Under the pieces are notes generated by a model. It worked only from the letters and a program-made list of their open reading frames with translations. It was not told where the DNA came from and ran no database searches. From the IMG/VR virus record IMGVR_UViG_3300046003_007892, positions 62,001 through 126,000 of that record: 64,000 nucleotides of DNA. One strand, given 5' to 3'. Every line of letters starts with the position of its first letter. Within the stretch, counting starts at the first letter, position 1. Made by a program: the position numbers and the translations under genes. Positions 5,890-34,974 of this stretch are shown in pieces.

Positions 5890-6543
5890 CTAGTCAGTAT
5901 CGTCGTCGTTGTCAAAGGAACTGCTATTGTAGAAGTGCATGTCGAGTATGCGCGCGCCCCTGGTCGCGTCGATCATAATCTCGTCGTCGCTCGCGTAGCC
6001 ATCCCATTGATCATGAATGCTATGATGGAGGGCATCCTTGGCCGGAGAGTCCGGGATAGTCTTCATGAAGGCACTCAGGCCTTGCATGGACCACAGAACG
6101 GAATCGGCGGGGACCTCGACCTCATAGACGACCATCAGGGACTGGAGGCCCTCAATGGCGTCTCCGGGGAGATGGCGACGATGGACTTGATCGAGACTGA
6201 AGTTGTTTCGGTTGATGAAGCCATGGGCTTTTTTCAGCGAAGACGTGAACGCCTGCGGGCCCTTCTGTAGATCGAACCGGCAGTGGGTCGCCATTTCGGC
6301 CTTGAGACCACTGAACATGTCTCCGGCAACTTCGAACCGGTGAATGTCCTCTTCGGTGACGTCGTGATAGATGGCCCGGAAATATTTTCCACCGCCGAAC
6401 ACTTCCGTGTAGCCGTGGTCACGCAAGACCTGGGCGGCGTGACGCTGGTCGAACCACTGATTATGTTGGATGTAGCTAGCCAGCGCGCTCAGCGTCTCGT
6501 CGAGGACGTTCAGGCTTTCGGCGAGTGTGAGGAAGCGTCTCAT
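5890..6543 (-). CDS. late protein with capsid-targeting-like N-terminus, possibly ART-like
   Basis: TATAAATA-N5-ATG; MRRFLTLAES; AFTSSLKKAHGF. Confidence 0.7.
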   Translation of the reverse strand: MRRFLTLAESLNVLDETLSALASYIQHNQWFDQRHAAQVLRDHGYTEVFGGGKYFRAIYHDVTEEDIHRFEVAGDMFSGLKAEMATHCRFDLQKGPQAFTSSLKKAHGFINRNNFSLDQVHRRHLPGDAIEGLQSLMVVYEVEVPADSVLWSMQGLSAFMKTIPDSPAKDALHHSIHDQWDGYASDDEIMIDATRGARILDMHFYNSSSFDNDDDTD

Positions 6544-6558
6544 CCTCGTATTTATAGG

Positions 6559-7350
6559 TCAGCCGACCTTGGTGGGGTCGCTGTCGTGAAGCATCAGGTT
6601 GGCGGCGTCCTTCTGGCTCTCCAGATAGGCGTAGCCACCAGCGAACATGACACGACCTTCGCATTTGTCTTCGACCCACGCGGCGAACTCGGGCAGGATT
6701 TCGTTCCACTGCTTCATCGGCGACGCGGCGAGGCGAACGCGGTGCTCGGGAAGATCGGACCCCGTCAGATGCTTGCCCGTCTCCTTGGTCAGGTGGGTGA
6801 GTTTTTTCTCAAGGGGGCGCCGGTATTGGGGGCGAGTGCTGCCGTGCTGAATCCCGTAGCCGACGCTGATGTTGAGCGCGCCCCACCAGCCGTTCAGAGT
6901 GGGAACCGGGCCCTTCTGGCGTTCGCTCTTGAAGTCGGCCTTGGTGATGCGCTTCGCCTTCGTGAAGGTGAAGCCGGAAATCTGCGTGCCGCAGAACCAG
7001 ACGAACAGGTCGGCAGTCTGAGCTTCAGTCAGAACTCCACCCTCGGGGCCGATGTCACCGACGAAGTGTTTGTCGAAGCCCGCGTAGCGACGCAGCACTT
7101 CACATTGGAATGCAGTGAGGCGGTTGTCCTGGTAATCGTTCACGATGGCGGAGCCGTCATCGTGGCCACCCGACCTGTCGCTGTCGTCGAAGCAGAGACC
7201 GATTTCCTTGACGGCTTCCGCGTAGGCGGCCTGCACGTCGGCGATGGGGTGAGACATCTGAACTTCGAAGACGACCCAGTGGTTATGGCCATCTTCGGAC
7301 CAATCACCAACGGTGACGATAGCGCGGTGCGGGGTGTCGGTCGCAGTCAT
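6559..7350 (-). CDS. hypothetical protein
   Basis: MTATDTPH start with GGAGAG SD after early promoter. Confidence 0.75.
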   Translation of the reverse strand: MTATDTPHRAIVTVGDWSEDGHNHWVVFEVQMSHPIADVQAAYAEAVKEIGLCFDDSDRSGGHDDGSAIVNDYQDNRLTAFQCEVLRRYAGFDKHFVGDIGPEGGVLTEAQTADLFVWFCGTQISGFTFTKAKRITKADFKSERQKGPVPTLNGWWGALNISVGYGIQHGSTRPQYRRPLEKKLTHLTKETGKHLTGSDLPEHRVRLAASPMKQWNEILPEFAAWVEDKCEGRVMFAGGYAYLESQKDAANLMLHDSDPTKVG

Positions 7351-7371
7351 GTGTCTCTCCTCTGAGAGGAC

Positions 7372-7406
7372 AGAATAGACGACCGTGCACACTTGTCAAG
7401 TAAATA
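7372..7406 (-). promoter_or_regulatory. early promoter
   Basis: TATTTAC-TTGACA-N16-TATTCT. Confidence 0.75.
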
Positions 7407-7408
7407 AA

Positions 7409-8092
7409 TCAGTTCACGGCCAGGATGTCGCGGCACTCCTCGAACGCCTTGTCGGCGTCGGCGATTTCGAGGGCTTGCTTGAGGCGATTGCGCAGAACTT
7501 CCTTGGCCATCTTGATCGCCTCCGCGTCGCTGATCTCCGGCAGGGTGAGGTCGATGGGCTCACGCAGCGAGGGGTGACGGGTGTCCGGGTCCTGCGGGGT
7601 AGTGCGGTATCCCCGCGCCTCAATCATGTTGGTGTAGTTGGGCTGCATGGGGACGCGCGTGATGATCTTGCGGGCGTGGTAGGGGTAGTGGGTTTCCCCC
7701 GTGGGGTAGCGGCGGGGCAGATCGGACTTTGCCCATTTGCCCACGAGAGCGATGGGCATCATCTCGCGTCGGGTGTCGCCGACCGCGACGATCTCGCCGC
7801 GCACGAAGGCACCGAAACCGTTGTCGTAGTGGACGATGGAGCCGAGTTCCTGGCTGTTCCACCATGCGTCGCCTTCGTCGATGATGGCGGCGATATGGTT
7901 CTCCATCTGAATGTGGCTCTGGATGTCAGTCGTCTCGTAGGCGCGGCGACCGCCCTCATAGCCCTCGGTGATGACCTCGCACGACCAGACGTTGGGGCCG
8001 AGAGCCTCGATGACCTTGAACTCAACGCGGGTGTCCGCGTAGGAGTCGTGGAAGGTGGTTCCGATTTTTACGACAGGCTTGCGGCTCGACAT
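7409..8092 (-). CDS. hypothetical protein
   Basis: 227 aa. Confidence 0.75.
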   Translation of the reverse strand: MSSRKPVVKIGTTFHDSYADTRVEFKVIEALGPNVWSCEVITEGYEGGRRAYETTDIQSHIQMENHIAAIIDEGDAWWNSQELGSIVHYDNGFGAFVRGEIVAVGDTRREMMPIALVGKWAKSDLPRRYPTGETHYPYHARKIITRVPMQPNYTNMIEARGYRTTPQDPDTRHPSLREPIDLTLPEISDAEAIKMAKEVLRNRLKQALEIADADKAFEECRDILAVN

Positions 8093-8116
8093 CTCAAATC
8101 TCCGTTGCTGGATGCG

Positions 8117-8163
8117 AAGATAGACGAACTGTGTTCTTTGTCAAGTAAATATCTAGATAAATA
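8117..8163. promoter_or_regulatory. back-to-back early (minus) and late (plus) promoters
   Basis: minus TTGACA-N16-TATCTT; plus TAAATA at 8146 and 8158. Confidence 0.7.
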
Positions 8164-8167
8164 TCGG

Positions 8168-8965
8168 ATGGACGGGATACGAAAATTTCTTTGCATCGTC
8201 GAATCTGCTCAGGCCCAAGCTCAGGCCCAGCCCGAGTTCCGATGCAGTTGCTGCCAGCCTCTGACCGAGTGGGCCGAAACGCTTACCAATTTGGGTCAGA
8301 CGTTTAGCGTCGGCGGCACTCAAATATCAATCGTCGGTAACGGTACGATAACCATTAACGGTCAAACCTATGGCGGGACCTCGTCTCAAGTCGGTGCACA
8401 GGAGCCATACGTCGCCAAGCCAGAAGAACGACGCGATGTAGCCGAACCAGATAAACCAGAAGAACGGCGAGATGTCGGCAATACCGAACTCATCTACTAC
8501 GAACATGTAAGCCCCCAGGTCAGAGATCAACTTGAACTCGCCGTATCCTACGCTCGCCGATGGATGGCCGCCAAAAAACTCACGTGGATTATGGACACCC
8601 AAATCATAATCAAGACAGACCCAACTTGGGGCGGCTTCTACGACGCCGATAACGATTCTCTTCGGATAACCCCCGGCTACTCAGTCAATGATCTCGTTCC
8701 TCTGATCATCCATGAGTTCGGCCATCGTTTCCATAACCGAGGCTGTCCTCGCGGCGTCTTCACCGGCATCGACACCGAAATCGCAGACAAGTACGCATAC
8801 TGTATGTCGCACGATACCTCAGTGTTCGTCAGTAACTATTCCAGAACGAACAGGAATGAGTTCTGGGCCGAGCATTTTGCCGGATGGGTCATGGGCACCA
8901 TGCCCGGAAATCGTGTGGGACCATGGATTGGCGAAATGGTAGCCAAATACAATAGAACCAACTAG
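8168..8965 (+). CDS. zinc metallopeptidase (lethal-factor-like), late
   Basis: HEFGH and YSRTNRNEFWAE; TAAATA-N4-ATG; MDGIRKFLCIVES. Confidence 0.75.
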   Translation: MDGIRKFLCIVESAQAQAQAQPEFRCSCCQPLTEWAETLTNLGQTFSVGGTQISIVGNGTITINGQTYGGTSSQVGAQEPYVAKPEERRDVAEPDKPEERRDVGNTELIYYEHVSPQVRDQLELAVSYARRWMAAKKLTWIMDTQIIIKTDPTWGGFYDADNDSLRITPGYSVNDLVPLIIHEFGHRFHNRGCPRGVFTGIDTEIADKYAYCMSHDTSVFVSNYSRTNRNEFWAEHFAGWVMGTMPGNRVGPWIGEMVAKYNRTN

Positions 8966-8970
8966 ATCGC

Positions 8971-9270
8971 ATGGCACAAATCAGATACGGCATCCCCAAC
9001 AACATCTCGGCCGACTGTCGTGTTGCCCTGCCGGTCAAGCGTCATGGTTTCGATTGGGGCCCATTCAACCTGTTTTTCATCCAGCCGATTTCGTCAGACA
9101 GGATAGCCTCGAAGGAACTCCAATCTGAGATTTTCGAATGGGTGAGGAAGTCGGTCTCGAAGACGGTCTACCACGTCCAGTATGAGAATCGTCTACGCGA
9201 CGACGAGACCTGGGAGTTCTTTTTCGCTAGTCCAGGAGACGCGTTGGCTTTCAGGATGAGATTTTCCTAG
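8971..9270 (+). CDS. hypothetical protein
   Basis: ends FFFASPGDALAFRMRFS. Confidence 0.7.
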   Translation: MAQIRYGIPNNISADCRVALPVKRHGFDWGPFNLFFIQPISSDRIASKELQSEIFEWVRKSVSKTVYHVQYENRLRDDETWEFFFASPGDALAFRMRFS

Positions 9271-9539
9271 TCGGCCCGGCCGATATAATCGGCATTCCAG
9301 CGCAACAACACCTTGGTGACCTCGGCGTCAGTAGCGACGCGAATCATTCCATAGATCGGTTTCTGATTTAGGACGGTGGGGGAATACGCAAACGCATTTC
9401 GGAGTTTGACCACGTTGTCATGCCTTTGGCTCGGGTGTTCCCAGGCGGGGTTCGTGATTCGACCTCCGCCCGAGACATTATACTGCCAGTCCGGGCAGTT
9501 CTCGTCCAGCCAGTCGTGAATATCCCGCCATTCCCACAT
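9267..9539 (-). CDS. hypothetical protein (start uncertain)
   Basis: MWEWRDIHDWLDENCPDW... Confidence 0.55.
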   Translation of the reverse strand: MWEWRDIHDWLDENCPDWQYNVSGGGRITNPAWEHPSQRHDNVVKLRNAFAYSPTVLNQKPIYGMIRVATDAEVTKVLLRWNADYIGRAD

Positions 9540-9570
9540 GGGGTGGGGGCCTACCCGAACTACAAATGGT

Positions 9571-9771
9571 CTATCGGACGGTGGCTGCGACACGCAATGC
9601 CTCAAGAGCGGTCTGGAGTTTGGCGGTCTCCTGGTCGTGCACAAGAAGGGCCCGCTGATCTTTCCAGAAGCGCGACGCCGTCTTGGCCATCTGCGCGTGC
9701 TCGACTTTACGCAGGGCGATCTTGTCCATCAGGACCCGCATCGAATCCCCAAGTATGATCGCCTCTGGCAT
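9571..9771 (-). CDS. hypothetical protein
   Basis: 66 aa, coupled. Confidence 0.6.
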   Translation of the reverse strand: MPEAIILGDSMRVLMDKIALRKVEHAQMAKTASRFWKDQRALLVHDQETAKLQTALEALRVAATVR

Positions 9772-10493
9772 CAGATGCCCCGTAGCGCGTTGGCGATCAT
9801 TTGGGCGACCTCTCGGGCGCGGGCGTCGGACCTCGCTTTATCCTCCGGCGACAAGGCGTCGTAGCGGGCCTTGTATTCGGCCATTTTCTTCTGAGAGTGG
9901 CGGCGATGCTCGTCATGAAAGAGTTCGAGGGCGTCGTCGTAGCGACCCTGCGCGACCAGAGCGGTATACTGGACGCCGACCTCCGGGAGTTCGGTGAGGA
10001 AATCGTCAGTCAAATATTTTTCGACCTGGGGAGGGACGATCTTGATCAGTTCCTCCATGGAGGTGATGAGATCAGCAATGTGCTTGGCGGCGACATTGAT
10101 CTTCGTCGGGTAGTAGAAACCCTGCTCTCCGACCGCGATGGCTTCGTTGTTGTCGTCCAACGCGATGCCCAGACCACCCGTCTCGGCGGCGGCGAAATCA
10201 TAGCTGCCGTTGGGACGAGCGGTGACGATAAGGAAGCCTCGCGCCGGGATGTTGAGCTTGCGGGCGAACGCCGTCTGCTCTTCCTGGAAACGGCTTCCTC
10301 CCTTGGATTTCAGGGTCGCGATCAGCCGTTTGGCGGTCACCATCGAGAAACCAACTCGGGCATGGTTGGTGGCCGAGCGGACCAGGATGGTGAAGTCGCC
10401 CGCCGCATCGCCGACCGTACAGACCAGCCAGCGGTCTCGGCCGAGATCGATGGAGAAGGAGACGCGGCTGTCGAAGCGTTCGAACTCAGCCAT
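9771..10493 (-). CDS. hypothetical protein
   Basis: start MAEFERF. Confidence 0.7.
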   Translation of the reverse strand: MAEFERFDSRVSFSIDLGRDRWLVCTVGDAAGDFTILVRSATNHARVGFSMVTAKRLIATLKSKGGSRFQEEQTAFARKLNIPARGFLIVTARPNGSYDFAAAETGGLGIALDDNNEAIAVGEQGFYYPTKINVAAKHIADLITSMEELIKIVPPQVEKYLTDDFLTELPEVGVQYTALVAQGRYDDALELFHDEHRRHSQKKMAEYKARYDALSPEDKARSDARAREVAQMIANALRGI

Positions 10494-10665
10494 TTTGTCC
10501 CGCCAGATATGCGCCCATTCCACGGATGGCGGCCCGCGCCTTGCGGCGATACCCATCAGAGTCATTGCAGGACTTGAGGTCGGTCAGCGGGCCCGCGAGG
10601 GTGTTGTGGCGAATGTCCTCGTTCACGAGGGCCAATGCGACGGCATCGACTAGGTTCTTGTCCAT
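10486..10665 (-). CDS. hypothetical protein
   Basis: MDKNLVDAVA..., 59 aa. Confidence 0.6.
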   Translation of the reverse strand: MDKNLVDAVALALVNEDIRHNTLAGPLTDLKSCNDSDGYRRKARAAIRGMGAYLAGQNG

Positions 10666-10666
10666 G

Positions 10667-11899: not shown

Positions 11900-11960
11900 A
11901 TCCTGCCATCTACATTAATTTGACGATCTCGTCTACCAAAATATTCGGTCTAAATACGGC

Positions 11961-12326
11961 ATGCGCACATATATCGACATCCTCATGGAATCCGCAGGCG
12001 AGCGGGAATACTTCATCCGCTTCGGGGACGTCCCTGAGTCGGGCTTCTCAACCATCCACAGCATGGGAAAATCCACGGGCAAGCAAGAAGTCGGTGTGTC
12101 GGCGTATTCAGCCTTCGAGGAGAACGGTCGCTGGTTCGTCGATGACGAAGAACTCAATCACACCTTCACCCTCGGCCACCTGATGAAAGAGGGTCGGGAT
12201 ATCTATCTGCTGACTGGCCGCCGCCTCCCCGAGAAGGGAAGCGACGGCGAGCCCCTGATAGCAGACGTAGAAATCGTCAAGAAACTACCGAAGGTATTTC
12301 AGGGGACGATGATCGACTTCCTCTAG
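11961..12326 (+). CDS. late protein with capsid-targeting-like N-terminus
   Basis: TAAATA-N4-ATG; MRTYIDILMES. Confidence 0.75.
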   Translation: MRTYIDILMESAGEREYFIRFGDVPESGFSTIHSMGKSTGKQEVGVSAYSAFEENGRWFVDDEELNHTFTLGHLMKEGRDIYLLTGRRLPEKGSDGEPLIADVEIVKKLPKVFQGTMIDFL

Positions 12327-12478
12327 TTCCCGGTCAGGGGTAGGACCAGGGTCAGGGTGTAGATCAGAGCCGCGACGAATTCGAGAATGAAACCCGTGCG
12401 GGAGAAATTTGGGCGGCTCGAAAATGCAACGAGACCGGCACCGACAGTGAAGAGAATAGCGCAGAGAAGGAGAATCAT
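12323..12478 (-). CDS. 51 aa two-TM membrane protein (not in ORF track)
   Basis: GAAAGG SD; MILLLCAILFTVGAGLVAF...FILEFVAALIYTLTLVLPLTGN. Confidence 0.6.
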   Translation of the reverse strand: MILLLCAILFTVGAGLVAFSSRPNFSRTGFILEFVAALIYTLTLVLPLTGN

Positions 12479-12535
12479 AATTGGCCTTTCAAAATGAAAG
12501 ACCAGTATGGACTTCTAGTTCAGCAATAGCGAAAT

Positions 12536-12838: not shown

Positions 12839-12866
12839 TCTGGGCTCCATTTGGTAGCCCGGAATA

Positions 12867-18767: not shown

Positions 18768-19255
18768 GCCGTCATCCCGCGAAGTTGCAGCATGGCGGCC
18801 CGGTAGGACGGCATCTTGCTGGTATTGAAGTCGAGTTCGGACAGACCCGCCAACTGGAGGGCCGTGTAGACCATCTCGGGGTGGAGTTCCTTCGCGAGCA
18901 CGGCGACGAAATGATCGGCGATCTTGTAGTAGTCGTTGTGCTGGCCGAGGGGTGTGCGCAGCCTCTTCAGGCGCGCGATCACCACGCTGATGAGCGAGTA
19001 TTGGAGCGGCAGCGACATGCCCTTCAGGCTCACGGCGCGCTGTTCCAGGATGTCTTCGACGGCGTCGCCGAGTTCGATGTAGCCGAACTTGCGGGGCAGG
19101 GCGGTGATCTTCGTGACGATCATGCGCCCCTCGGCGAGGCGGCATTCCACGGTGTCGCCTTCATTGAGTTCCAGCGCGGCGGCGATCTGGTGCGGAACCG
19201 CGACGAGCGTGTCGCCCGTGCATTCGTCGTCGTAAATCTTGACTTGTTCGCGCAT
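18764..19255 (-). CDS. AbrB/MazE-like DNA-binding domain protein
   Basis: VAVPHQIAAALELNEGDTVECRLAEGRMIV. Confidence 0.65.
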   Translation of the reverse strand: MREQVKIYDDECTGDTLVAVPHQIAAALELNEGDTVECRLAEGRMIVTKITALPRKFGYIELGDAVEDILEQRAVSLKGMSLPLQYSLISVVIARLKRLRTPLGQHNDYYKIADHFVAVLAKELHPEMVYTALQLAGLSELDFNTSKMPSYRAAMLQLRGMTA

Positions 19256-21483: not shown

Positions 21484-21981
21484 TTAGACGATTGCGGTTC
21501 CGCCGTTCGTCAGTCTGATCTCAGACCCGGCGATGAGGCAGAGTTCGTCCTCCCGGTGGAAGTCCCAGAAGATGCCCCGCACCACGCTGCCCAGCCAGTC
21601 GATGGTGGAGTGGTCAATGTAAGCTTCCAAGATGGGACCGCCGTTGGCGAACTGCTCGGCCATGTCTGGGTTGACGGTCCAGTGCACGCCCAAGGGTTCT
21701 CGGGGTTTTTCAGTCTCGCGGAAGCCCCGATACATAATCTCCTGGCGGGCGTATGCAGCCACGTGGGCCTTGGCGTCACCGGTCATACTCACGAGCCACT
21801 GGTCTAGGGCATCTCGATTTCCGCCGAACATGTGCTCGATGCCGCCTTCGGTCCACCCGATCTGTTCTTTGTAACAGTCATGGACGTCGCCGTTCGCGGG
21901 GTCCCGCGAGTAGGCGATCACTTTCTCGGCGGTGACGTTAGCCAGTCCGGCCGTTTCCATGAGATCGATGTAGGCGCGCAT
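21484..21981 (-). CDS. late protein with capsid-targeting-like N-terminus, possibly ART-like
   Basis: TAAATA-N5-ATG; MRAYIDLMET; MYRGF..LGVHWT..A..FA. Confidence 0.7.
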   Translation of the reverse strand: MRAYIDLMETAGLANVTAEKVIAYSRDPANGDVHDCYKEQIGWTEGGIEHMFGGNRDALDQWLVSMTGDAKAHVAAYARQEIMYRGFRETEKPREPLGVHWTVNPDMAEQFANGGPILEAYIDHSTIDWLGSVVRGIFWDFHREDELCLIAGSEIRLTNGGTAIV

Positions 21982-21994
21982 GCACCTATTTAGA

Positions 21995-23370: not shown

Positions 23371-24195
23371 TCAAATCTCTTCTTCGCTCAGGTCGGCAGA
23401 GTCGGCGCGGAATTCTTTTGCGAAGATGGACTTGATGTTCTTGGGGTCGAACACGAGCCACCAGTGACTGCTCTCGTAATCCCGAGAGCCATGATCGGCC
23501 AGCGTGTCGGAGATGTAGATACCGTCATAACCCTCGGCCATGATGGCGGCTTTGAACTCGTCTACTTCCTGGTCGTTCGACTTCACGCCACGGGGCAGAT
23601 GGGCCAGCAGGCGATGCCAGCCGTCCGTGCGCTGATAGCTGGCTTCCAACGCTCTGACTTCCCTGCCCAGCAATTCGTAGCGGGCCCGGTCAAAGGGCTG
23701 CCCGTCAGATTTGGCCATGAAGGTCGAACCGCCGTCTTCAGTTTTGAGGCCACGTTCGTTTTCCCGACCGCTGGCGTTGTATCGTTTGTGGAGGGCGTAA
23801 TACTCACGCATCTTGTCGGCGTCATCGCCCCACAGTCCCTCGGAATCCATATAGAGGGGCTTGGTGACCCGGAGGAAGCAGGGCATCACGTTTCCTCCGC
23901 CACCCGCACCAGCGGGCAGAGAATCGGTTCGATCACTGGCGACGCCCGCGAAATAGCTGGGAGTTCTCGGGTCCACGTCGAACCAGAACCCGAGACGGTT
24001 GAAGCCGTAGGACTTTCGGTTCTCCGATGCGTGCTTGAACTCCGTCACGTCTTCGAAGGTGCCGTGATAGCAGACGACTGGATGGCCATCGCCGTCTACG
24101 ACCTTGCTGCCCTGAAACCACCGCTGGAATCCTGGATGCTGGAGAACCCGCTCAACGGGGTTGGCAGCTTCGACGAGGTCGATCAGATCACGCAT
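23371..24195 (-). CDS. ART-PolyVal-like ADP-ribosyltransferase, late
   Basis: WFQGSKVVD..P..YHGT, GFWF, GYDGIYI, VFDPKNIKS; TAAATA-N4-ATG; MRDLIDLVEA. Confidence 0.75.
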   Translation of the reverse strand: MRDLIDLVEAANPVERVLQHPGFQRWFQGSKVVDGDGHPVVCYHGTFEDVTEFKHASENRKSYGFNRLGFWFDVDPRTPSYFAGVASDRTDSLPAGAGGGGNVMPCFLRVTKPLYMDSEGLWGDDADKMREYYALHKRYNASGRENERGLKTEDGGSTFMAKSDGQPFDRARYELLGREVRALEASYQRTDGWHRLLAHLPRGVKSNDQEVDEFKAAIMAEGYDGIYISDTLADHGSRDYESSHWWLVFDPKNIKSIFAKEFRADSADLSEEEI

Positions 24196-24202
24196 GGCGT
24201 AT

Positions 24203-24706
24203 TTATTCGGAGCGGAAGACGATGTCGGACGCATTCACACGCAAGACCGGTGGCATCTTGACGATCACCTCATCTTGGGCTCGCATCTTCGTGAACGGTT
24301 GGGCCTCTTCGTCAAAACGGACGAGGTCGCAGAACTCGTCCAGACCTTCCTTCTTGATCACGACATAGGCGGAGTCGAAGCCGAACATGAAATCGGTTGC
24401 GCTGTCTTGTTCACTCGACCAACTAGCAAGCGGTCTCCCCGCCGAGATAATGTCGAAGAAACCATTTTGGCGCAGGCTTTCTTTCTGGGCCCGGTCGGGC
24501 ATGTAGCCTCGATAGAGGGCGGCATGACCAGAGGTGAAGTGGTTGGCAGTCGCTTCCAGAGCCAGGAGATCGTTCTGGACCTCGTCCATGTCACCGCAGA
24601 CCCAGGTCGAAAGCGCACGACATAGGAGCTTCACCTGCGGGTCAGGATGCTGGCAGGATTGCCAGTGCGGTTTGGCAGTCTCCATGAGGACGTCGATGTA
24701 TCGCAT
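24203..24706 (-). CDS. late protein with capsid-targeting-like N-terminus, possibly ART-like
   Basis: TAAATA-N4-ATG; MRYIDVLMET; LYRG..ASWS..A.DF..QDEV. Confidence 0.7.
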   Translation of the reverse strand: MRYIDVLMETAKPHWQSCQHPDPQVKLLCRALSTWVCGDMDEVQNDLLALEATANHFTSGHAALYRGYMPDRAQKESLRQNGFFDIISAGRPLASWSSEQDSATDFMFGFDSAYVVIKKEGLDEFCDLVRFDEEAQPFTKMRAQDEVIVKMPPVLRVNASDIVFRSE

Positions 24707-24710
24707 CCGA

Positions 24711-24724
24711 TATTTACCTAAATA
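24711..24724. promoter_or_regulatory. divergent late promoters
   Basis: TATTTA-CC-TAAATA with ATG 4 nt away on each side. Confidence 0.8.
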
Positions 24725-24728
24725 CGCC

Positions 24729-25898
24729 ATGCGCGATCTCATCAATCTCATCACCGAAAGCCAGCAGACCGTCACGCTGTATCGGGGAGATGCATCAGAG
24801 ATCGAACGCCTCACGATGGACAAGGCGGACTCGGAGGCCTTGTTCGGGCGAGGCATCTACCTCACCGACAGTCCCGAGGTTGCCGCCGACTACACCCTGA
24901 AGGGGAACGGCGGGGACATCGTTTTTCAATCGGGCGCGTACAACAGTTCGTTCCAATCCAAGGAACAGCTAATCCAGGCCTATCTGGAAAAAATCTGCAT
25001 GGAGCTTGGCTACGAAGAAGAGGCCAAGAGGCTCAAAGAGCAATGGCATCAGATTGCTCTGGAACGCCAAAACAAGGCGGTGATTCCAGATGGTCTCTAC
25101 TGGGATGGGATGTCCTCTGAGGAACAGAACAAAGCCCACGTCGTCTACCGGGAAATCAGAAACAAGCCCGCGCTAGAGGCCAGGGCCGAGTATGAAGTCG
25201 AACGTCGCGCCCTGTCCCAGAAATTCGTGGCCAAGGCCAAAAAGGTCTATCGGGAGCGCATCAAGGATATGCGGATTATCCGCCAGAGCACGGGCGCATG
25301 GGTGTTCGTCAAATCGGAGCGCGGGGGCACGATCTCAACGTTTGAGGTGCCGCGCGCCTACTGCGAGATGACCCTCGACACCGAGGCGCCATTGGCAGAC
25401 GATGTCTTGCCGATTCTTCGGGATGCTTTCTATGCGGCATATGACAAAATCCCATACGGGACTGGCCGGATGGACCTCCGGGTCTGGGACGCCAAAGGTG
25501 ATGAGAAATTCCCGCTGTCGTTCGACGATTACGTCGAGGGCTATAAGACGATGGGGTCCAGGTATGCTTGGGCCGACCACAACATTGGCGGCAAGGGGAA
25601 GAACCCCACAGTGGACGAACTCCTAAATGGAACCCACGCTGGCTACCACGTCTTGAAAAATGCGCAGGACAAACTCATCGCTGATCTGAAGGGCAAGGGC
25701 TACGTGGGCTTCCGCTACCAGGGCGGCGTTCGCGTGGGAGGAACCGGCAATCGAGGTGGTGGTGGCGTCCTACACAACGCCTATTCGTTCTGGGACGAGA
25801 AGGTCATCAACGGCTTCCGTGGCGATCACCACGCCTACGAGGACCCCAAGGTTGACCCGTCCTCGGCCAAGGGCATGCGCTCGACGAGCGTTCTCTAG
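24729..25898 (+). CDS. ART-PolyVal-like protein with helical insert, late
   Basis: LYRG..FGRGIYLTDSPEVAADY..GYVGF; MRDLINLITES. Confidence 0.7.
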   Translation: MRDLINLITESQQTVTLYRGDASEIERLTMDKADSEALFGRGIYLTDSPEVAADYTLKGNGGDIVFQSGAYNSSFQSKEQLIQAYLEKICMELGYEEEAKRLKEQWHQIALERQNKAVIPDGLYWDGMSSEEQNKAHVVYREIRNKPALEARAEYEVERRALSQKFVAKAKKVYRERIKDMRIIRQSTGAWVFVKSERGGTISTFEVPRAYCEMTLDTEAPLADDVLPILRDAFYAAYDKIPYGTGRMDLRVWDAKGDEKFPLSFDDYVEGYKTMGSRYAWADHNIGGKGKNPTVDELLNGTHAGYHVLKNAQDKLIADLKGKGYVGFRYQGGVRVGGTGNRGGGGVLHNAYSFWDEKVINGFRGDHHAYEDPKVDPSSAKGMRSTSVL

Positions 25899-28159: not shown

Positions 28160-28161
28160 GA

Positions 28162-28524: not shown

Positions 28525-28600
28525 TTCGACTCCAATTGTTGTCCGTGAACCTATTTATGCAAGTAAAATCCACCCATAAGTGAGTACCCATAAATAGCCA

Positions 28601-29014
28601 ATGCGATATAGTGAGATCAACGAAGGTCAGGTTAGGAAGGTGGAAGTTCACTTCCGGCAGCCCGAAGTTATCGTTTACATCAACCCATCTGCTGCTCAAA
28701 TCGATACTGCTCTGTCGCGGACACAGTATGCTTGCCTGCGAGCCCACCTGGGAGATAAACTATTGGTTTGGGATGCCGAGTTTGCCACGCACGATCACGT
28801 CGATGACTGCGGAGAGTTCGGCAAGCTCAAGTATATCCGCCTCCTGATCGAGGACCACAAAATCCGCTGCATGCGCTACGGCTATGACGGCGCCGATTTC
28901 CCCACGGACCCAAACACCCTGGAAGACCTCATCTCGCACGAGCAACTCGTCGAGGCCGTGCAGTCCCATCCGCTGATCATGCAGGCGTTCCCCGGCTACC
29001 CGGTCTGGGCCTAA
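28601..29014 (+). CDS. late protein with capsid-targeting-like N-terminus
   Basis: TAAATA-N4-ATG; MRYSEINEG. Confidence 0.75.
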   Translation: MRYSEINEGQVRKVEVHFRQPEVIVYINPSAAQIDTALSRTQYACLRAHLGDKLLVWDAEFATHDHVDDCGEFGKLKYIRLLIEDHKIRCMRYGYDGADFPTDPNTLEDLISHEQLVEAVQSHPLIMQAFPGYPVWA

Positions 29015-29021
29015 ATACAGC

Positions 29022-29777
29022 ATGCGCCTTCTTGCCCTCTGCGAATCCGAGCAAAGCGATAGAGATGATCGCTTGAGGGCCAAACTGGCTTTCAAGCAGA
29101 TCAAGTATTGGCTCGACGCCAACGCGGATGATGGCTTCCGGCGTTTGAAGAAACTCCCCGAGGGAACCCGCTACGCGGGCTCGTTCGCACTCTTGTCTGA
29201 AATGTGCGATCTTGATGCCGACTATCCAGATTTGGCATTCATCTTTATCGACCGGCTCGATATCACTGGCGGGAGAGTCACGGCCAGCTTTGGGCAGTCT
29301 GCGGACAAGTCCAAATCTTTCATCTTCATTGGATGCCTGAAGGGACCTGGGGATTCCACGTATCTGAACACGCGTTTCTCCGGGACGGAGAAATATTTCG
29401 TCCACGAGTTCATGCACTACCTGATGCGCAAACGGGCACCGGATACGAAGCCGTCAACGTCCAAGCTGAATGGCAACGATTGGACGGACTACCACAACGA
29501 CGCTGACGAGACGAACGCCTACTATCAGGAGGCCGCTCACGGTGCTGTGGATTTCTTCCGCGTGGTTGCCTCGCACGCGCCAGTGCGCGTCGATGAGTTT
29601 GCCGACATGACGGTTCAGGAACTCGTCGCCTTCATCGTTCCACGGTTCGTCAACCAGGATTTCCTCGGCGACCTCACGGCGGACAATCGCAGGGCTCTCT
29701 TCAAGAGACTGGCTCGATGCGTGAACGAGACCATCAAGCCCATGCTAGAGCGCGCACGAGTAGCAGCCGTCGTCTAG
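29022..29777 (+). CDS. late HExxH metallopeptidase-like protein with capsid-targeting-like N-terminus
   Basis: TAAATA-N4-ATG; MRLLALCES; FVHEFMHY..DETNAYYQE. Confidence 0.7.
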   Translation: MRLLALCESEQSDRDDRLRAKLAFKQIKYWLDANADDGFRRLKKLPEGTRYAGSFALLSEMCDLDADYPDLAFIFIDRLDITGGRVTASFGQSADKSKSFIFIGCLKGPGDSTYLNTRFSGTEKYFVHEFMHYLMRKRAPDTKPSTSKLNGNDWTDYHNDADETNAYYQEAAHGAVDFFRVVASHAPVRVDEFADMTVQELVAFIVPRFVNQDFLGDLTADNRRALFKRLARCVNETIKPMLERARVAAVV

Positions 29778-30206: not shown

Positions 30207-30637
30207 TTCACCGCCGCGAGCGCGTGGTTGAGTTGGAAATCCGAGACCCCCTTGGCCAGGATGAAGACGCCAGGGAGCTTGGGTGGGTGGATGTCCCGCT
30301 CTGGGTGGCCCATGCGGTCGAGTTCGTAGATGACCTCGTCGATGGCGAGTGATCGGGCCTCTTCTTCAATCCGAATCATTTCCAACAGACGGTACGAGCT
30401 AGGGCTCGGTATATAGCTGTGCCCTAGCTTATCCTTGAGACGGTACGCTTTCACGAAGCGGAGGTTATTTTCGCCACGAATGTCGAGCCATTGAATGAGA
30501 CCGTTGTGTGGGTTTCTCCCCATGATCTGAATGGTCTGGCTCCGGGGGTTGAAGCGCAGTTCTCCGATGGGTCCCTGGCCGCCCCGTTGTCCAATGCCCA
30601 TGTTGGTGATTTGGTGACCTACCGTTGAGACACTCAT
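30203..30637 (-). CDS. hypothetical protein, paralog 2
   Basis: PGVFILAKGV motif. Confidence 0.7.
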   Translation of the reverse strand: MSVSTVGHQITNMGIGQRGGQGPIGELRFNPRSQTIQIMGRNPHNGLIQWLDIRGENNLRFVKAYRLKDKLGHSYIPSPSSYRLLEMIRIEEEARSLAIDEVIYELDRMGHPERDIHPPKLPGVFILAKGVSDFQLNHALAAVK

Positions 30638-31083
30638 GCGGCCAGAGCCCCATAGAGACGCCGCAGGGTGATCTCCGGCACGCCCTTGCGAAGCACGAAC
30701 ACCCCGTCTGGGCGGTCTGCTTCAGGCAGCGCGTCCTGCTTCAGGATACGCTGCTTGAAGTAGTTGTTCTTGATCGTGGTCGCATTGGAATACGTGTTCA
30801 GGTAATAGTTCGAGACGTTGTAGGTATAGGGGTTCTTGGGAGGAGGCGGTTTCGCCTCTCCTGTGTGGAAATCGTACTCGGCACCGTTTGAGAACGTCAT
30901 CTTACGGTTCCGTTTTTCCGACTTCTTGATCTTTTTCTTGCTCGGTTTGTCGGGCTCGACATAGGGGGCACGCGGGTCATCCGCACCATAGAAGGTGTCA
31001 GTGGTGCCGTCGTATATGTTGCCGTTTGAGAACCTGACAGCCACAGTGGCTCCGAAGGTAAGGGATGCCCGCATTCGTAGCAT
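30634..31083 (-). CDS. hypothetical protein, paralog 1
   Basis: PEADRPDGVFVLRK motif. Confidence 0.7.
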   Translation of the reverse strand: MLRMRASLTFGATVAVRFSNGNIYDGTTDTFYGADDPRAPYVEPDKPSKKKIKKSEKRNRKMTFSNGAEYDFHTGEAKPPPPKNPYTYNVSNYYLNTYSNATTIKNNYFKQRILKQDALPEADRPDGVFVLRKGVPEITLRRLYGALAA

Positions 31084-31103
31084 CGAACGCGGGCCCCTGT
31101 CGA

Positions 31104-31784
31104 TTAGATTTTCGCTGGCCAGAGTTTGTCGATTGCCCCGCGCATGAACTCCTTGCAGGTGCAGGATTTGCCCGTGACGTGGTCTTCAATCGAGTTGTCG
31201 CGGAAACGGTAGGTGCGGATTTTGTCACCCCGCATCCCGCTGCCGACCTGGGCCGCACGAATCACATTGGTGGCCTCTCGCCCCGCCGTGCTCCGACCGG
31301 CGTCCAGTTTCGCCACAAGGCCTTCCATGGCCTCGCGCTCGTTGGAGGCACGGCTCCGTCCTTGAGACTTCACCGACAGCCCGGTGGGGACATGGGTGAG
31401 GTCTAGGGAGTTGTGGTGCTTGTTGGCGTGCTGGCCGCCCGCGCCGGTTGCCCCGAACCACCGGTAGGAAAAATCACTATTGTCCCTGCGGTCGTAGGCG
31501 GCATCTACAGCGTCTGCGTCCGACAGCACACTGACCGTGACCGTGCTGGTGTGCACGCGGCCCTTGCGTTCGGTTGGTGGTACTCTCTGGATTCGGTGGC
31601 CACCGGCTTCGTGCTTCAGGCCTTTCGCGGCATCACTCGCGACAATGGTCACCATCGAGTCGGTGACGTCGATGCTGGTCAGTCAACCCTTTTGGGTCAG
31701 GTATTTTGCGTAGGTTTCGCCCAAGTCTGCCATAAACAGCTTGGCGTCAGAACCGCCCTCGCCGGGGCGAATCTCGATAATCAT
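31104..31784 (-). CDS. RF1-like peptide chain release factor lacking domain 1, in-frame TGA at codon 34
   Basis: GAGGAG SD; MIIEIRPGEGGSDAKLF; QRVPPTE (PxT); GGQ; TGA at 31683-31685. Confidence 0.85.
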
Positions 31785-31850
31785 GAGACACTCCTCTGGG
31801 GCGCCAATCGCCCCAAGGTATTTACCTTACAGGAATGGTCTACCAGATGT

Positions 31851-32159
31851 CTAGTTCTTCGGGAACTTCGGCCCGGCGATCAGGTAGACGGACTTGTCTT
31901 CCACGGAGCCACGGCCGATCACGACGATCTGTTTGGCGATCAGGCGTTTGACAGCGGACCATTCGCGCGGCGTGGTGATGATGCCGACGTGGGTCTCCGG
32001 GCCGCCAGTGGGATTGACGAGTTTCTGGCTCGCATAGCCGGTTTCCCACTCGCCATTGCGCTTGAGGCGATTGATGAGGTCTTCACCCGCCCGCATGTCG
32101 GAGATGATGCTGGCTTCGCAGTCAGCGATGGTGCGGGGCGGCTTGGGGGAAAAGGTCAT
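31851..32159 (-). CDS. hypothetical protein
   Basis: ATG 6 nt after TTGACA-N16-TAAGTT. Confidence 0.65.
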   Translation of the reverse strand: MTFSPKPPRTIADCEASIISDMRAGEDLINRLKRNGEWETGYASQKLVNPTGGPETHVGIITTPREWSAVKRLIAKQIVVIGRGSVEDKSVYLIAGPKFPKN

Positions 32160-32197
32160 GAGGGCAACTTACACCATGGTGGATGCTTGTCAAGTAA

Positions 32198-32413
32198 TTA
32201 GTCTTCGACGAACATGCTCCACGGCCACGCTCGCTTCATCGTGTGATCGACGCCAAGATCGTCGCTGCTGTTGGGCGGGAGGCAGGCTTGTTCGAGCCTG
32301 CGATAGCGGATGTAGCCGGGTTGGTTCTGGTCCACTCGGGCTACGCCGATGCCGCCGAAACCATTGACGACCAGATCGCCAGGATGGACGTCGAAATGAG
32401 GGGAGTGAGGCAT
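32198..32413 (-). CDS. hypothetical protein
   Basis: TGATG-coupled start. Confidence 0.55.
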   Translation of the reverse strand: MPHSPHFDVHPGDLVVNGFGGIGVARVDQNQPGYIRYRRLEQACLPPNSSDDLGVDHTMKRAWPWSMFVED

Positions 32414-32616
32414 CAGATTGCCGCTGCCCACCAGTCGAACGCCCGGCTGCCCGGATAATCGCCATGCTTGTGGACGCCTTCGGCTTTCGCTGCCTTGATT
32501 GCGGCTTTCTCCGACAGGGCCATGACGGACACCGTTACGCCCCCGTCGAAGCGGGCATCGTAGCGGGGGTTCTGGGTCTTGGGCTTGAAGTTGACGAGGA
32601 ACTTACGAAGCATCAC
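32413..32616 (-). CDS. hypothetical protein
   Basis: 67 aa, coupled. Confidence 0.6.
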   Translation of the reverse strand: MMLRKFLVNFKPKTQNPRYDARFDGGVTVSVMALSEKAAIKAAKAEGVHKHGDYPGSRAFDWWAAAI

Positions 32617-32845
32617 CGTTCTCCGAATAGACCAGGATGATGTCCCGCGCCGTCTTCAGTGCGCCCGCCTTGGCGACGTGGGTATTGTGTCGCCCGGATT
32701 TCTGATCGACGGGGTTCTCCCATTGCTCACGCGTCCACGTTCTGCTCTGATTGGCGACGAGGAAGCCTGCCCGGTTCAACCCTTCGAGGTCTAGCCCCTT
32801 GGGGTCCACCGAGAAAATTTCTGCGAGGGTGAGTTGCTCAGGCAT
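32603..32845 (-). CDS. hypothetical protein
   Basis: MPEQLTLAEIF. Confidence 0.6.
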   Translation of the reverse strand: MPEQLTLAEIFSVDPKGLDLEGLNRAGFLVANQSRTWTREQWENPVDQKSGRHNTHVAKAGALKTARDIILVYSENGDAS

Positions 32846-33101
32846 AGGGCTTTCCGGTGACATAGACGGAGTTCTCGGCCGCGATGGGGAAGTCGGGGAA
32901 GTCCTGGAACCCCAGCGGGTTGATGACGTCGCCGCCGTCCGCCCACACCCAACGGGAGTGACGGCCATCGGGATTTCCCCACATAGCTTCGCCGACCTTC
33001 GGTTGAAGACCGTTCTCGCGGTAATAGCCCGCGATGATGACGCGGCGCAAGAAATCCGTTTCGGTCTGGGCTTCCCAGAGGGGTTTCCATTCAGGTTGCA
33101 T
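32838..33101 (-). CDS. hypothetical protein
   Basis: MQPEWKPLW. Confidence 0.6.
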   Translation of the reverse strand: MQPEWKPLWEAQTETDFLRRVIIAGYYRENGLQPKVGEAMWGNPDGRHSRWVWADGGDVINPLGFQDFPDFPIAAENSVYVTGKPYA

Positions 33102-33447
33102 TTCCGGCCTCTTCAATGGTCTTGCGAATATCGCGCAGGAGTTTGGCAAAAGTTTTTTCGTGGATGACCGTGCCGCCCGTTTGATCGGGTAGGCTGTAGA
33201 TCGCGCACCACGCGGGACCCAGCGTTGTCCGCTTTGACTTATAGTCGTATTCGATGGTCCCGATTTGGGTTCCATCCAGTTTTATCACATACCGCTGGAG
33301 TTTCGAGGACAGATGCTCGTTGCCGGGTACGCGACTATAGGTGAGGTTGAGGCCGTGCTGCCGCTCAACAGGGAAGCGACCGCAAGAGCGGCATTGCCCG
33401 TGGCGGTTCTTCTTGAAAACTCCACACCATTGGCAGCGAGGGTCCAT
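33091..33447 (-). CDS. hypothetical protein with N-terminal Zn ribbon
   Basis: CQWC..CRSC. Confidence 0.65.
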   Translation of the reverse strand: MDPRCQWCGVFKKNRHGQCRSCGRFPVERQHGLNLTYSRVPGNEHLSSKLQRYVIKLDGTQIGTIEYDYKSKRTTLGPAWCAIYSLPDQTGGTVIHEKTFAKLLRDIRKTIEEAGNAT

Positions 33448-33449
33448 GG

Positions 33450-33731
33450 CTAGATCGGTGCCGAATAGGCGAGCAGAAGGGCGGTTTCTCGCTCGTTGAG
33501 TTCGACGGCCTGAACGCCCCAGCCCTGCGAGAGCATCGACAGGTTGCAGAGAAGATCATGTTTCTCCTTGAGGATTGCTTCCGCTTCTTTCCGAGTCGGC
33601 ATCCCGCCGCGCCCCAGAATATCGACCGGCCAGTTCGTCCTTTCGATTTGGCGACGAGATGTCTCCACGTCGTCGCGAAGCCCCTTCATGATGGGCCCTC
33701 TGGTAAAATCTCCGGTGACGATCAGTTTCAC
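33450..33731 (-). CDS. hypothetical protein
   Basis: 93 aa. Confidence 0.6.
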   Translation of the reverse strand: MKLIVTGDFTRGPIMKGLRDDVETSRRQIERTNWPVDILGRGGMPTRKEAEAILKEKHDLLCNLSMLSQGWGVQAVELNERETALLLAYSAPI

Positions 33732-33797
33732 GGCCTGCCCTCTATGTGATCAGAACCCCTATCCCGTTGATCTATTCTTGTCAACTAAATAAGTACG

Positions 33798-34364
33798 ATG
33801 AGAACTCTCCGAACCTGCCTTGAATACGAGGCCACATGCAAACCTGAGATCGCCGACCTGATGGCACGGGCTGAATACCTCACCGATCATGAACTCCAGA
33901 CCGTCCAGGTTCCGCTACCGTGGTTTCGTGATGCCCTGCGGGAACTCCGCGACGAACTGAAGGGCCAGACGATCATGAAGATCACCGGGGCGGTCCTGAA
34001 TGACTACGTCACGATCTCGACCAACCCCGACCCCGAAGGCGTCACCTATCAATGGATGGGGATGGACACCTACGTCAAGGTCGGCAACACGCAACTGCTC
34101 CTCAAATATGGGGAGTATTTCTGGTTCGACCCCGAGGGCGGCGTCTGGCTCGACACCATCTACTGTCGGGTGCCCGACCCGATCTTGCGCGCCAGCCAGC
34201 CCGGTCGAATCGCGGTCATGACCCGCAGCCGCTATCAAGAAACCCTGCGGGCGGCCAGGAACAAGAACTGCCCCGCAAACGCACAGGTGATGGAGATCAG
34301 CGACGGTCGTCCCTCTGCTCTCGGTGGAGTCCTTGGACAGTTCGGCGTCCGTATCCAGCGATAA
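33798..34364 (+). CDS. late protein with capsid-targeting-like N-terminus
   Basis: TAAATA-N6-ATG; MRTLRTCLE. Confidence 0.7.
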   Translation: MRTLRTCLEYEATCKPEIADLMARAEYLTDHELQTVQVPLPWFRDALRELRDELKGQTIMKITGAVLNDYVTISTNPDPEGVTYQWMGMDTYVKVGNTQLLLKYGEYFWFDPEGGVWLDTIYCRVPDPILRASQPGRIAVMTRSRYQETLRAARNKNCPANAQVMEISDGRPSALGGVLGQFGVRIQR

Positions 34365-34371
34365 ATACGCC

Positions 34372-34974
34372 ATGCGCTGGATAGAGATCAACGAGGCCCG
34401 AGAGGCACCCCTCTACCATTTCATGGACGTCAAGAAGGCCATCGACGTCTTGTTGCACGACGCCATGCCCGCGAACTGGACCCACTACATCAATGATCAG
34501 CCGGTCAAGGGGAACAGTTTCACACGAAATCCCAGGTTTGAGATCGGCGGTCGCCCTGTCCGATTGATCATGAACCAGCACGCCCTGGCGGCGCGGCACA
34601 AGATCATCCCTCTCGACGGTGAGATCACCTTCCGGCATCCCAAGAACGACGAGGTCGGCTATGTCTCTGCCGACCCTTGGCCGCCCAAGAAACTGCACGG
34701 TTTCAAAGACCGCGTCATCAACTCCCGAAAACCTGGAGAAGATCGGGCCCTTCAGGAGGAGTTCGTCGTCGGCGACATCGCGCCTCTGGCCCGGATGATT
34801 GTCGAGATCGAGATTCTGAAGCCCAACTTCTATCACATGTCCGGCCAGCAGGCTTCCGACCTTCTCGACCTCGTTCGCAACTACGGTACAGAGCACAACG
34901 TCGCGACTAAAATCCATCCCGATTTCATTGAGCAAGTCAACGACATCAGGGAAATGTGGAGAGAAGAGGACTAG
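34372..34974 (+). CDS. late protein with capsid-targeting-like N-terminus, possibly ART-like
   Basis: TAAATA-N4-ATG; MRWIEINEA; LYHF..NSFTRN..QEE. Confidence 0.7.
   Translation: MRWIEINEAREAPLYHFMDVKKAIDVLLHDAMPANWTHYINDQPVKGNSFTRNPRFEIGGRPVRLIMNQHALAARHKIIPLDGEITFRHPKNDEVGYVSADPWPPKKLHGFKDRVINSRKPGEDRALQEEFVVGDIAPLARMIVEIEILKPNFYHMSGQQASDLLDLVRNYGTEHNVATKIHPDFIEQVNDIREMWREED

Follow-up and report, generated by a model that had tools for sequence, protein, structure and literature searches.

Phage T4 loads proteins into its head by means of a capsid-targeting sequence (CTS), the N-terminal peptide MKTYQEFIAE, which is removed by a single cut of the prohead protease and causes any protein fused to it to be packaged (PMC8442874). 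The internal proteins of T4 are a diverse anti-defence set with only the CTS in common (PMC3012670), and the protease, gp21, cuts after Glu, removing the propeptides of gp23, gp24, Alt and the internal proteins (PMC5694885). Here, we analysed a window of 64,000 nucleotides, bases 62001-126000 of the 240,363-bp linear IMG/VR viral contig IMGVR_UViG_3300046003_007892 (240 kb), in which eleven dispersed genes begin with a similar short peptide, hereafter the tag. We propose, with a probability of roughly 0.7, that a giant phage of the Atu_ph07 lineage makes extensive use of a T4-type propeptide that targets proteins to the capsid (prohead core), and that the common N-terminus is this propeptide.

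The likeness to T4 extends over several features. As on IPI, IPII, IPIII and Alt, a peptide of about ten residues stands on unrelated proteins, which are late expressed in T4 and linked here to a TAAATA box; the peptide ends in hydrophobic-x-Glu followed by a small residue; the cargo appears to include ADP-ribosyltransferases (ARTs), as Alt in T4, and is hypervariable between relatives; and a Peptidase_S77 protease, a Gp23 capsid protein and a late promoter of the TAAATA type occur in the clade of the contig. At the same time, 35-45 genes are tagged in half a genome here, compared with a handful in T4; the consensus starts M-R instead of M-K-T-Y, with weak cross-recognition; the box abuts the ATG in most genes, suggesting leaderless mRNA; and the cargo consists mostly of putative DarT-like and ART-PolyVal enzymes and HExxH proteins, for which we infer cleavage and injection. 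The phiKZ-like giant phages (phiKZ, 201phi2-1 and SPN3US) also package many internal proteins, have a T4-related protease that cuts after Glu and contain paralogues that keep their N-termini. However, their propeptides are mostly of at least 100 residues and end in S/A/G-x-E, with a small P3, whereas the tags described here have 8-10 residues and L or I at P3, and the contig, being without Chimalliviridae hallmarks, is of a different lineage. Finally, the polyvalent proteins (Iyer et al. 2017) resemble this system in their ART-PolyVal, metallopeptidase-like and other effector domains, in their presumed delivery with the DNA and in their early action against host defences. Unlike them, the proteins encoded here are separate and small, with their own tag and often their own promoter, and not one giant polypeptide, although in related metagenomic proteins as many as eight DarT-like domains are fused, with (L/I)-x-E sites between them.

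In huge phages, hundreds of genes have no known function, and the packaged, first-acting proteins are known for few cultured phages; a short N-terminal address would let the packaged, probably injected, proteome be read from metagenomes. The principle is known from T4 and would be extended here to a remote branch of giant phages within the T4 superfamily; what is new is the scale, the fusion of promoter and ATG, the abundance of DarT-like and ART-PolyVal proteins in the cargo, and the prediction of virion proteins across phages without common cargo. A literature search returned no paper linking 'capsid targeting' with Atu_ph07, Rak2 or GAP32.

The N-terminal tag in the window and the contig

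All eleven N-termini reported in the initial annotation were found where it had placed them, each beginning a complete open reading frame (ORF) of 121-389 amino acids (aa). The sequence TAAATA precedes all eleven ATGs, with a spacer of 4 nt in eight genes, 5 nt in two and 6 nt in one, and no Shine-Dalgarno sequence is present upstream of these genes. In 10 of the 11 tags, (I/L)-x-E falls at residues 6-12, the exception being the gene that starts at 33798 (MRTLRTCLEYE). The genes are given below together with the control region of a divergent pair and an untagged control gene; coordinates are those of the window unless the contig is named, a slash marks the predicted cleavage point, and 'box' denotes TAAATA.

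5890-6543, minus strand: tagged gene, 217 aa, MRRFLTLAE/S; box 6549-6554, spacer 5 nt
8168-8965, plus strand: tagged gene, 265 aa, MDGIRKFLCIVE/S; box 8158-8163, spacer 4 nt; CSCC and HEFGH motifs
11961-12326, plus strand: tagged gene, 121 aa, MRTYIDILME/S; box 11951-11956, spacer 4 nt; weak DUF6098 match
21484-21981, minus strand: tagged gene, 165 aa, MRAYIDLME/T; box 21987-21992, spacer 5 nt
23371-24195, minus strand: tagged gene, putative ART-PolyVal ADP-ribosyltransferase (PF18760), 274 aa, MRDLIDLVE/A; box 24200-24205, spacer 4 nt
24203-24706, minus strand: tagged gene, 167 aa, MRYIDVLME/T; box 24711-24716, spacer 4 nt; left arm of the divergent pair
24707-24728: 22-bp divergent control region, back-to-back boxes TATTTA-CC-TAAATA forming a near-palindrome; drives the genes starting at 24706 (minus) and 24729 (plus)
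24729-25898, plus strand: tagged gene, 389 aa, MRDLINLITE/S; box 24719-24724, spacer 4 nt; LYRGD immediately after the tag
28601-29014, plus strand: tagged gene, 137 aa, MRYSEINE/G; box 28591-28596, spacer 4 nt
29022-29777, plus strand: tagged gene, 251 aa, MRLLALCE/S; box 29012-29017; HEFMH (H128, E129, H132)
33798-34364, plus strand: box-led gene, 188 aa, MRTLRTCLEYE, a weak or doubtful tag; box 33786-33791, spacer 6 nt
34372-34974, plus strand: tagged gene, 200 aa, MRWIEINE/A then APLYH, predicted DarT-like ADP-ribosyltransferase fold; box 34362-34367
42757-43299, plus strand: control, TAAATA-N4-ATG gene without a tag; homologue of Atu_ph07 virion protein gp306

Eleven is thus the number for the window and not for the genome: a strict rule, M[RK] with [ILVMF]xE within residues 5-12, applied to the 369 predicted genes of the contig, tags 35 of them, and curation raises the count to about 45, so that the tagged share is about a tenth of the genes. 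The consensus is M-[R/K]-x-x-(I/L)-x-(L/I)-x-E-(S/A/T/G), 8-10 residues long. Among 44 curated tags, aligned on the Glu, residue 2 is R or K in most, the Glu stands at residue 8-10 in 32, and in 33 it is followed by S, A, T or G; 42 have L or I at P3, a figure partly built in by anchoring the alignment on [ILVMF]xE. A preference of gp21 for L or I at P3 is said to have been described by Black et al. in 1994, and the end of the tag appears to fit a prohead-protease site composed of a hydrophobic residue (L/I), any residue and Glu, followed by a small residue. When every ATG in six frames was considered, M[RK]..[hydrophobic]x[hydrophobic]xE occurred 29 times in the contig compared with 0-7 times in 20 mononucleotide shuffles, and a chance origin of the motif was rejected on this comparison.

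The bodies behind the tag, described at the outset as otherwise unrelated, mostly are so, in that most have no BLASTP similarity to one another and several different folds are present. The description does not hold for a pair of ART-PolyVal proteins, a DarT-like family of five members, and the paralogues of the genes at 8168, 11961 and 28601: the 8168-8965 protein has a paralogue at contig 30832-31692 (minus strand, 35% identity), that of 11961-12326 has two close to the right end of the contig, and that of 28601-29014 has one or more elsewhere on the contig. In this respect the tag resembles a T4-type CTS, a short N-terminal peptide common to unrelated bodies. The small paralogue groups could also be taken to mean that the tagged genes are one old paralogous family, which kept an N-terminal helix without an addressing function while the bodies diverged. 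We regard this as highly improbable, given that the bodies range from 93 to 564 aa and represent different folds (ART-PolyVal, DarT-like, a SleB-type hydrolase, and HExxH proteins without a solved-fold match), that structural models place the tag outside the folded body, and that the tag predicts virion presence in another phage with unrelated cargo.

Tagged proteins in the virion of Atu_ph07

The contig has a GC content of about 58% and a CheckV completeness of about 45%, and many lake-water metagenomes contain near-identical sequence; the runs listed were of lake-water DNA, none of RNA. In the large subunit of its type II topoisomerase, identity is 52% with Sinorhizobium phage Phosso (469 kb), 50% with Agrobacterium phage Atu_ph07 (490 kb) and about 43% with the Rak2/GAP32/CBB group, which follows next. 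About 45 backbone genes are common to the contig and Atu_ph07 at 30-58% identity, including those for the baseplate proteins gp180-182, a gp15-type tail sheath stabiliser, and the virion proteins gp305 and gp306. A megablast search of 12 kb against GenBank phages gave zero matches. The contig represents about 45% of an Atu_ph07-like giant phage from lake water; the Atu_ph07 lineage itself is a distant member of the T4 superfamily.

Atu_ph07 has been cultured, and its authors provided a list of virion proteins determined by electrospray-ionization tandem mass spectrometry, together with homologues of T4 gp21 (gp204), gp23 (gp215) and gp55 (gp694) (PMC6102473). We scored all 714 annotated coding sequences of this phage, taking the gp number as their order (verified at more than 40 anchor genes), against Table S5 of that paper, which lists 140 of the 714 proteins. 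The strict rule assigns a tag to 26 Atu_ph07 proteins, of which the virion list contains 21 (Fisher p=1.0e-11 against the background of 140/714). A position matrix trained only on the contig tags placed virion proteins in all nine of the best ranks among the 714 N-termini, and at a score of at least 6 it selected 8 virion and 0 non-virion proteins (p=1.9e-6). The tagged virion proteins include gp43 (MRLIDLLES), gp53-63 (MRWEQLTES and similar), gp206 (MSIRKFLNIINES), gp594, gp482, gp487, gp561 and gp672, and in gp381 (MKWQDLSEGIKVYHGS) an ART-like motif follows immediately after the tag; the tag subtype of the window gene 8168-8965 also stands on the virion proteins gp33, gp206 and gp594. Mass spectrometry recovered 31 peptides of gp53, 21 of gp33 and 15 of gp594. 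The presence of tagged proteins in virions, as foreseen in the initial annotation, is therefore borne out in this relative.

The bodies of the approximately 45 tagged contig proteins gave no significant match to the 714 Atu_ph07 proteins, the three short marginal hits (E 0.002-0.008) involving no tagged virion protein. Since the two phages have a backbone and the tag in common but no cargo, it seems that the address was kept while the cargo was replaced, and the replacement of cargo behind a shared tag is complete between relatives whose backbone genes are 30-58% identical. Recombination may be the means by which such cassettes are exchanged. The tag already predicts virion proteins in another phage without common cargo.

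A second N-terminal motif, M..x.[RK]L..LAG[LI], was noticed on the Atu_ph07 virion proteins gp111 and gp257 and on a protein of a metagenomic relative (L028, 5119-5433, minus strand); a clear counterpart of ..L..LAG[LI] was sought in the contig and none was found.

The TAAATA box and selection on the peptide

There are 90 copies of TAAATA in the contig, whereas base composition predicts 39. A predicted start follows 44 of the 90 at a distance of 3-6 nt (in 33 cases exactly 4 nt), and a further group of about 22 is found 13-56 nt ahead of genes with a Shine-Dalgarno sequence; because of these spacings, TAAATA behaves as a promoter element serving two gene classes, leadered and ATG-abutting. The box stands before or near almost all tagged genes on the contig, and strict tags are found in 21 of the 44 box-abutted genes versus 14 of the 325 others (Fisher p=2e-13). 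The T4 late promoter, TATAAATA, is positioned at -13 to -6 (PMC1524935), and phages CBB and GAP32 have ATAAATA upstream of structural genes (PMC5259590). In Atu_ph07, ATAAATA lies within 60 nt upstream of 52 genes, 40 of which encode virion proteins (p=1e-20). The claim that the tag belongs to late genes agrees with its concentration behind this T4-late-promoter-like box, which also marks virion genes in the cultured relative.

In Atu_ph07 the distance from the start of the box to the ATG is typically 26-28 nt (55 nt at most), and a Shine-Dalgarno sequence follows the box; given these leadered boxes, the ATG-abutting arrangement is a feature of the high-GC lineage of the contig. Homologues in other phage contigs retain the tag together with TAAATA-N5/6-ATG: one metagenomic relative (L027) has TAAATA-N6-ATG before a DarT-like homologue and in another (L028) three tagged genes, including one for an ART-PolyVal protein, are preceded by TAAATA-N5-ATG. 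In three tandem pairs of the window, the TAA stop of the upstream gene provides the first three bases of the next box (TAA-ATA-N4-ATG; boxes 24200-24205, 29012-29017 and 34362-34367), leaving only 7 nt of intergenic space, and three divergent tagged pairs are 22-35 bp apart (window 24707-24728, contig 18896-18921 and contig 31693-31727). Judging by their position, abutting boxes would give rise to leaderless or near-leaderless late mRNA; if leaderless, the promoter-ATG fusion is an uncommon mode of late expression for a T4-like system.

As the box abuts the ATG in 44 genes, most of which begin ATG-CGN, the N-terminus might be a by-product of constraint on DNA or translation, such as the promoter, the initially transcribed sequence or the codon needs of leaderless mRNA. 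The codons argue otherwise. The conserved residues vary synonymously, with GAA 29 times and GAG 15 times for the tag Glu of the 44 curated tags and six different codons for the Arg at position 2. Moreover, box and tag occur without each other: 14 strictly tagged genes have no abutting box, including four consecutive genes in one operon (contig 164291-167064), and 23 box-abutted genes fail the strict rule, some with looser curated tags and others, clear structural and homing-endonuclease genes, with no tag at all. The box-led structural genes without a tag include those for the gp15-type tail sheath stabiliser (contig 168649; PF16724, 2e-14) and the gp306 homologue. In addition, Atu_ph07 has the same peptide behind ordinary Shine-Dalgarno leaders, and the tag predicts virion presence. 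We therefore give this account hardly any weight, and a DNA-motif explanation was rejected on the synonymous variation and the tagged genes without a box. Over the first 11 residues, the helical hydrophobic moment is 0.443 for tagged and 0.285 for other genes (p=1.6e-8), and in two AlphaFold2 models (predicted local distance difference test scores of 89.7 and 83.6) residues 1 to 5-10 are of low confidence and the fold begins at about residue 10-14. Collectively, these data show that selection acts on the peptide and not on the DNA.

Two box-abutted untagged genes of the window, 2185-2715 (plus strand) and 49915-50223 (minus strand), encode N-termini that resemble homing endonucleases of the GIY-YIG or T5orf172 type (..YRITNLTNGKFYVGAHQ), and the product of the latter is 40% identical to Atu_ph07 gp395.

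Cargo and the proposed route into the head

The cargo includes members of the ART superfamily, recognised by a curated ART match or by an ART fold with catalytic residues of the H-Y-E type. PF18760 (ART-PolyVal) matched above the cut-off in window 23371-24195 (65 bits, 1.2e-17) and at contig 18922 (61 bits, 3.4e-16). Five small DarT-like proteins, represented in the window by 34372-34974, have LYHGT immediately after the tag; this family has no Pfam match, yet a search with its profile found 1,552 cluster representatives at E<=0.001, and wherever the ESM Atlas records a taxon for its neighbours, they are viral. A strict tag starts 81 of the 150 best profile matches, typically as MRxxELxEgRdAPLYHGT. 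The model of the 34372-34974 protein matched the DarT structure 7omx (E=4.4e-5, probability 1.0), followed by Tpt1, DarTG and PARP, and H16 and E129 are invariant across 48 sequences of the family. Two further window proteins gave weaker indications: 24729-25898 has sub-threshold matches to DUF3990 and ART-PolyVal, and a related-locus search with this 389-aa protein found nothing in viral contigs, whereas the ESM Atlas leads from 5890-6543 to ART families are weak, below the level trusted alone. The tag points to an unusually large ART set as first-strike factors, of which the DarT-like ones may act on nucleic acids.

HExxH motifs are found in the 8168 protein and its paralogue, in the 29022 protein and in that encoded at contig 20738. 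In the 29022 family, the H, E and H are invariant and 13 of the 13 metagenomic homologues begin M..x.LFE[SD]E; the model shows a disordered tag, with the body starting at residue 10. A Foldseek search of the PDB with this HEFMH protein gave no significant match (best E=0.35), and the ESM Atlas leads (M78, SprT-like) are below the level trusted alone, so that it may be regarded as a candidate metallopeptidase by virtue of its invariant HExxH motif. Of the remaining tagged cargo, the protein encoded at contig 4727 is a SleB-type cell-wall hydrolase whose gene adjoins baseplate genes, and many are proteins of unknown function; a word-based homologue search with the 121-aa protein of 11961-12326 retrieved only itself. 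Effector-like cargo, as anticipated, is accordingly represented by ART-PolyVal proteins, DarT-like ADP-ribosyltransferases and HExxH proteins.

Both the 8168-8965 protein and its paralogue (contig 30832-31692) have a CSCC cysteine cluster near residue 23-29 in addition to HEFGH, and in the window copy an AQAQAQAQ linker follows immediately after the tag.

A serious alternative, although an unlikely one, is that the tagged proteins are targeted to the virion as structural or scaffold-core components, or as tail or whisker parts, and not as delivered effectors. The tail of Atu_ph07 bears whisker-like structures and the virion contains 102 proteins without a known function (PMC6102473), and the tagged gp199, gp205 and gp206 are encoded among head-morphogenesis genes, in the region from portal gp198 to capsid gp215. 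The T4 core proteins gp67 and gp68 also reach the prohead via the core and are later degraded, and the tagged cell-wall hydrolase gene of the contig adjoins baseplate genes. Yet much of the identifiable cargo resembles host-acting enzymes (two ART-PolyVal proteins, five DarT-like ADP-ribosyltransferases and the HExxH proteins), and, unlike structural parts, the cargo is wholly different in a relative with the same virion backbone; T4 Alt, an ADP-ribosyltransferase that is packaged and injected, offers a precedent. For some members, such as gp199, gp205 and gp206, the structural reading may be correct.

We propose the following route for a capsid-targeting propeptide. Tagged genes would be transcribed late from a gp55-type TAAATA promoter, located either about 24-30 nt upstream and accompanied by a Shine-Dalgarno sequence or only 4-6 nt before the ATG, the latter yielding leaderless or near-leaderless mRNA. 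Residues 1 to 8-10, M-[R/K]-x-x-(I/L)-x-(L/I)-x-E, would form a short amphipathic segment that docks the protein onto the assembling prohead core; a gp21-family prohead protease would then cut after the Glu of (L/I)-x-E, making S, A, T or G the new N-terminus, and the mature cargo would be retained in the particle and be delivered into the next host together with the DNA. For docking, cleavage, location in the head and injection, the model follows T4 by analogy. The tag probably loads ADP-ribosyltransferases and other effectors into the particle. In Atu_ph07, gp204 matches Peptidase_S77 (PF03420) at 1.4e-21 and gp215 matches Gp23 at 1.3e-92, and some contig tags, such as MKTYADILVE/S and MKTYFEIVAE/S, are near the T4 CTS, the second matching it at 7 of 10 positions. 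The T4-CTS-like interpretation of the N-terminus, put forward in the initial annotation, thus gains support from virion enrichment, the late box, the protease of the clade, the effector-like cargo and its turnover; two outcomes that the annotation had named as refuting it, absence of the proteins from virions and an equal frequency of the motif in early genes, were not what these comparisons showed. The tag also offers a practical means of packaging foreign proteins in large capsids.

Several observations weigh against the propeptide interpretation. Five of the 26 rule-tagged Atu_ph07 proteins were undetected in virions, and the proteome, being that of whole virions with contaminants (a RecA-like protein and ribonucleotide reductase), is mute on head location and N-terminal processing. 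The contig, about 45% complete, has no prohead protease (PF03420/Peptidase_S77) and no genes for portal, protease, scaffold, capsid or the gp55 late sigma factor, with only sub-threshold matches to the capsid family PF07068; the head module and late sigma factor are presumably in the missing half of the genome, and the link to a gp21-type protease rests on relatives and not on the contig. The contig-trained matrix ranked IPII and IPIII 25-26 among 1070 candidate starts of T4, and IPI and Alt, with low scores, at 347 and 289, respectively; given this moderate transfer, the contig and T4 motifs are alike in logic and style but not identical. As to the promoter, in T4 geometry a 5-nt spacer places +1 on the A of the ATG, whereas the 4-nt spacer, taken strictly, places it on the T, so that a leaderless start needs a 1-nt shift, which a purine-start preference would allow. 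Lastly, the Glu of the DarT-like family may belong to the domain and not to a cleavage site.

In the same ranking, T4 gp2 (gene 2, NC_000866, start 76885, minus strand), which begins MAIFQIINES, stood 13th of 1070, above IPII and IPIII. This protein is the DNA-end protector and travels with the DNA.

Another possibility is that the tag serves as a recognition signal for a phage Clp machinery, or as a pro-peptide that silences toxic enzymes in the producing cell, virion presence being secondary. Homologues of ClpX (gp2), ClpP (gp676, 59% identity) and a Clp adaptor (gp708, named as a ClpS homologue) are encoded by both the contig and Atu_ph07, a possible role of such chaperones in moving proteins into heads has been suggested by Iyer et al., and many of the cargo proteins would be toxic if active. 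Nevertheless, there is no evidence connecting the motif to Clp recognition, and an (L/I)-x-E followed by a small residue at residue 8-10 matches the logic of the T4 protease and CTS. We consider the Clp or silencing account improbable as the primary role; it is compatible with capsid targeting and need not exclude it.

Metagenomic proteins with 4-8 tandem DarT-like domains (P0002, of 2290 aa, P0005, P0008 and P0009) have (L/I/V)-x-E followed by G or A before every domain, a pattern that fits the Glu as a processing boundary, and they could be polyproteins cut by the prohead protease. More tentatively still, and with odds that we place short of even, the Atu_ph07 lineage took the polyvalent protein apart, keeping dozens of effector domains as small proteins with a portable capsid address of 8-10 residues, often leaderless behind a late promoter, while the prohead protease became a general effector-maturation enzyme that trims tags and cuts polyproteins at (L/I)-x-E. 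On that view, the tag would predict, from sequence alone, the injected proteome of uncultured phages of the T4 superfamily and would serve as a handle for loading foreign proteins into giant capsids.

With regard to other genes of the window and contig, plus-strand ORFs at 5935-8167 (111, 360 and 526 aa) were rejected as shadow ORFs of minus-strand genes: the minus-strand frames 5890-6543, 6559-7392 and 7409-8092 have a higher per-codon score and higher GC content at third codon positions, and the true plus-strand gene begins at 8168. PHROGs and Pfam gave nothing for 8 of the first 10 window proteins. Aminoacyl-tRNA synthetases of class II (Asp/Lys/Asn-type) and class I (lysyl-type) are encoded at contig 141650-143596 and 175752-177548, and an Acb1 anti-CBASS domain (8e-27) lies at the N-terminus of a 740-aa protein (contig 227308-229530, minus strand). 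An Mtd_N domain (major tropism determinant N-terminal, 4e-13) begins a 1390-aa protein (contig 210208-214380, minus strand), which adjoins a second giant protein of 1370 aa; both may be receptor-binding proteins.

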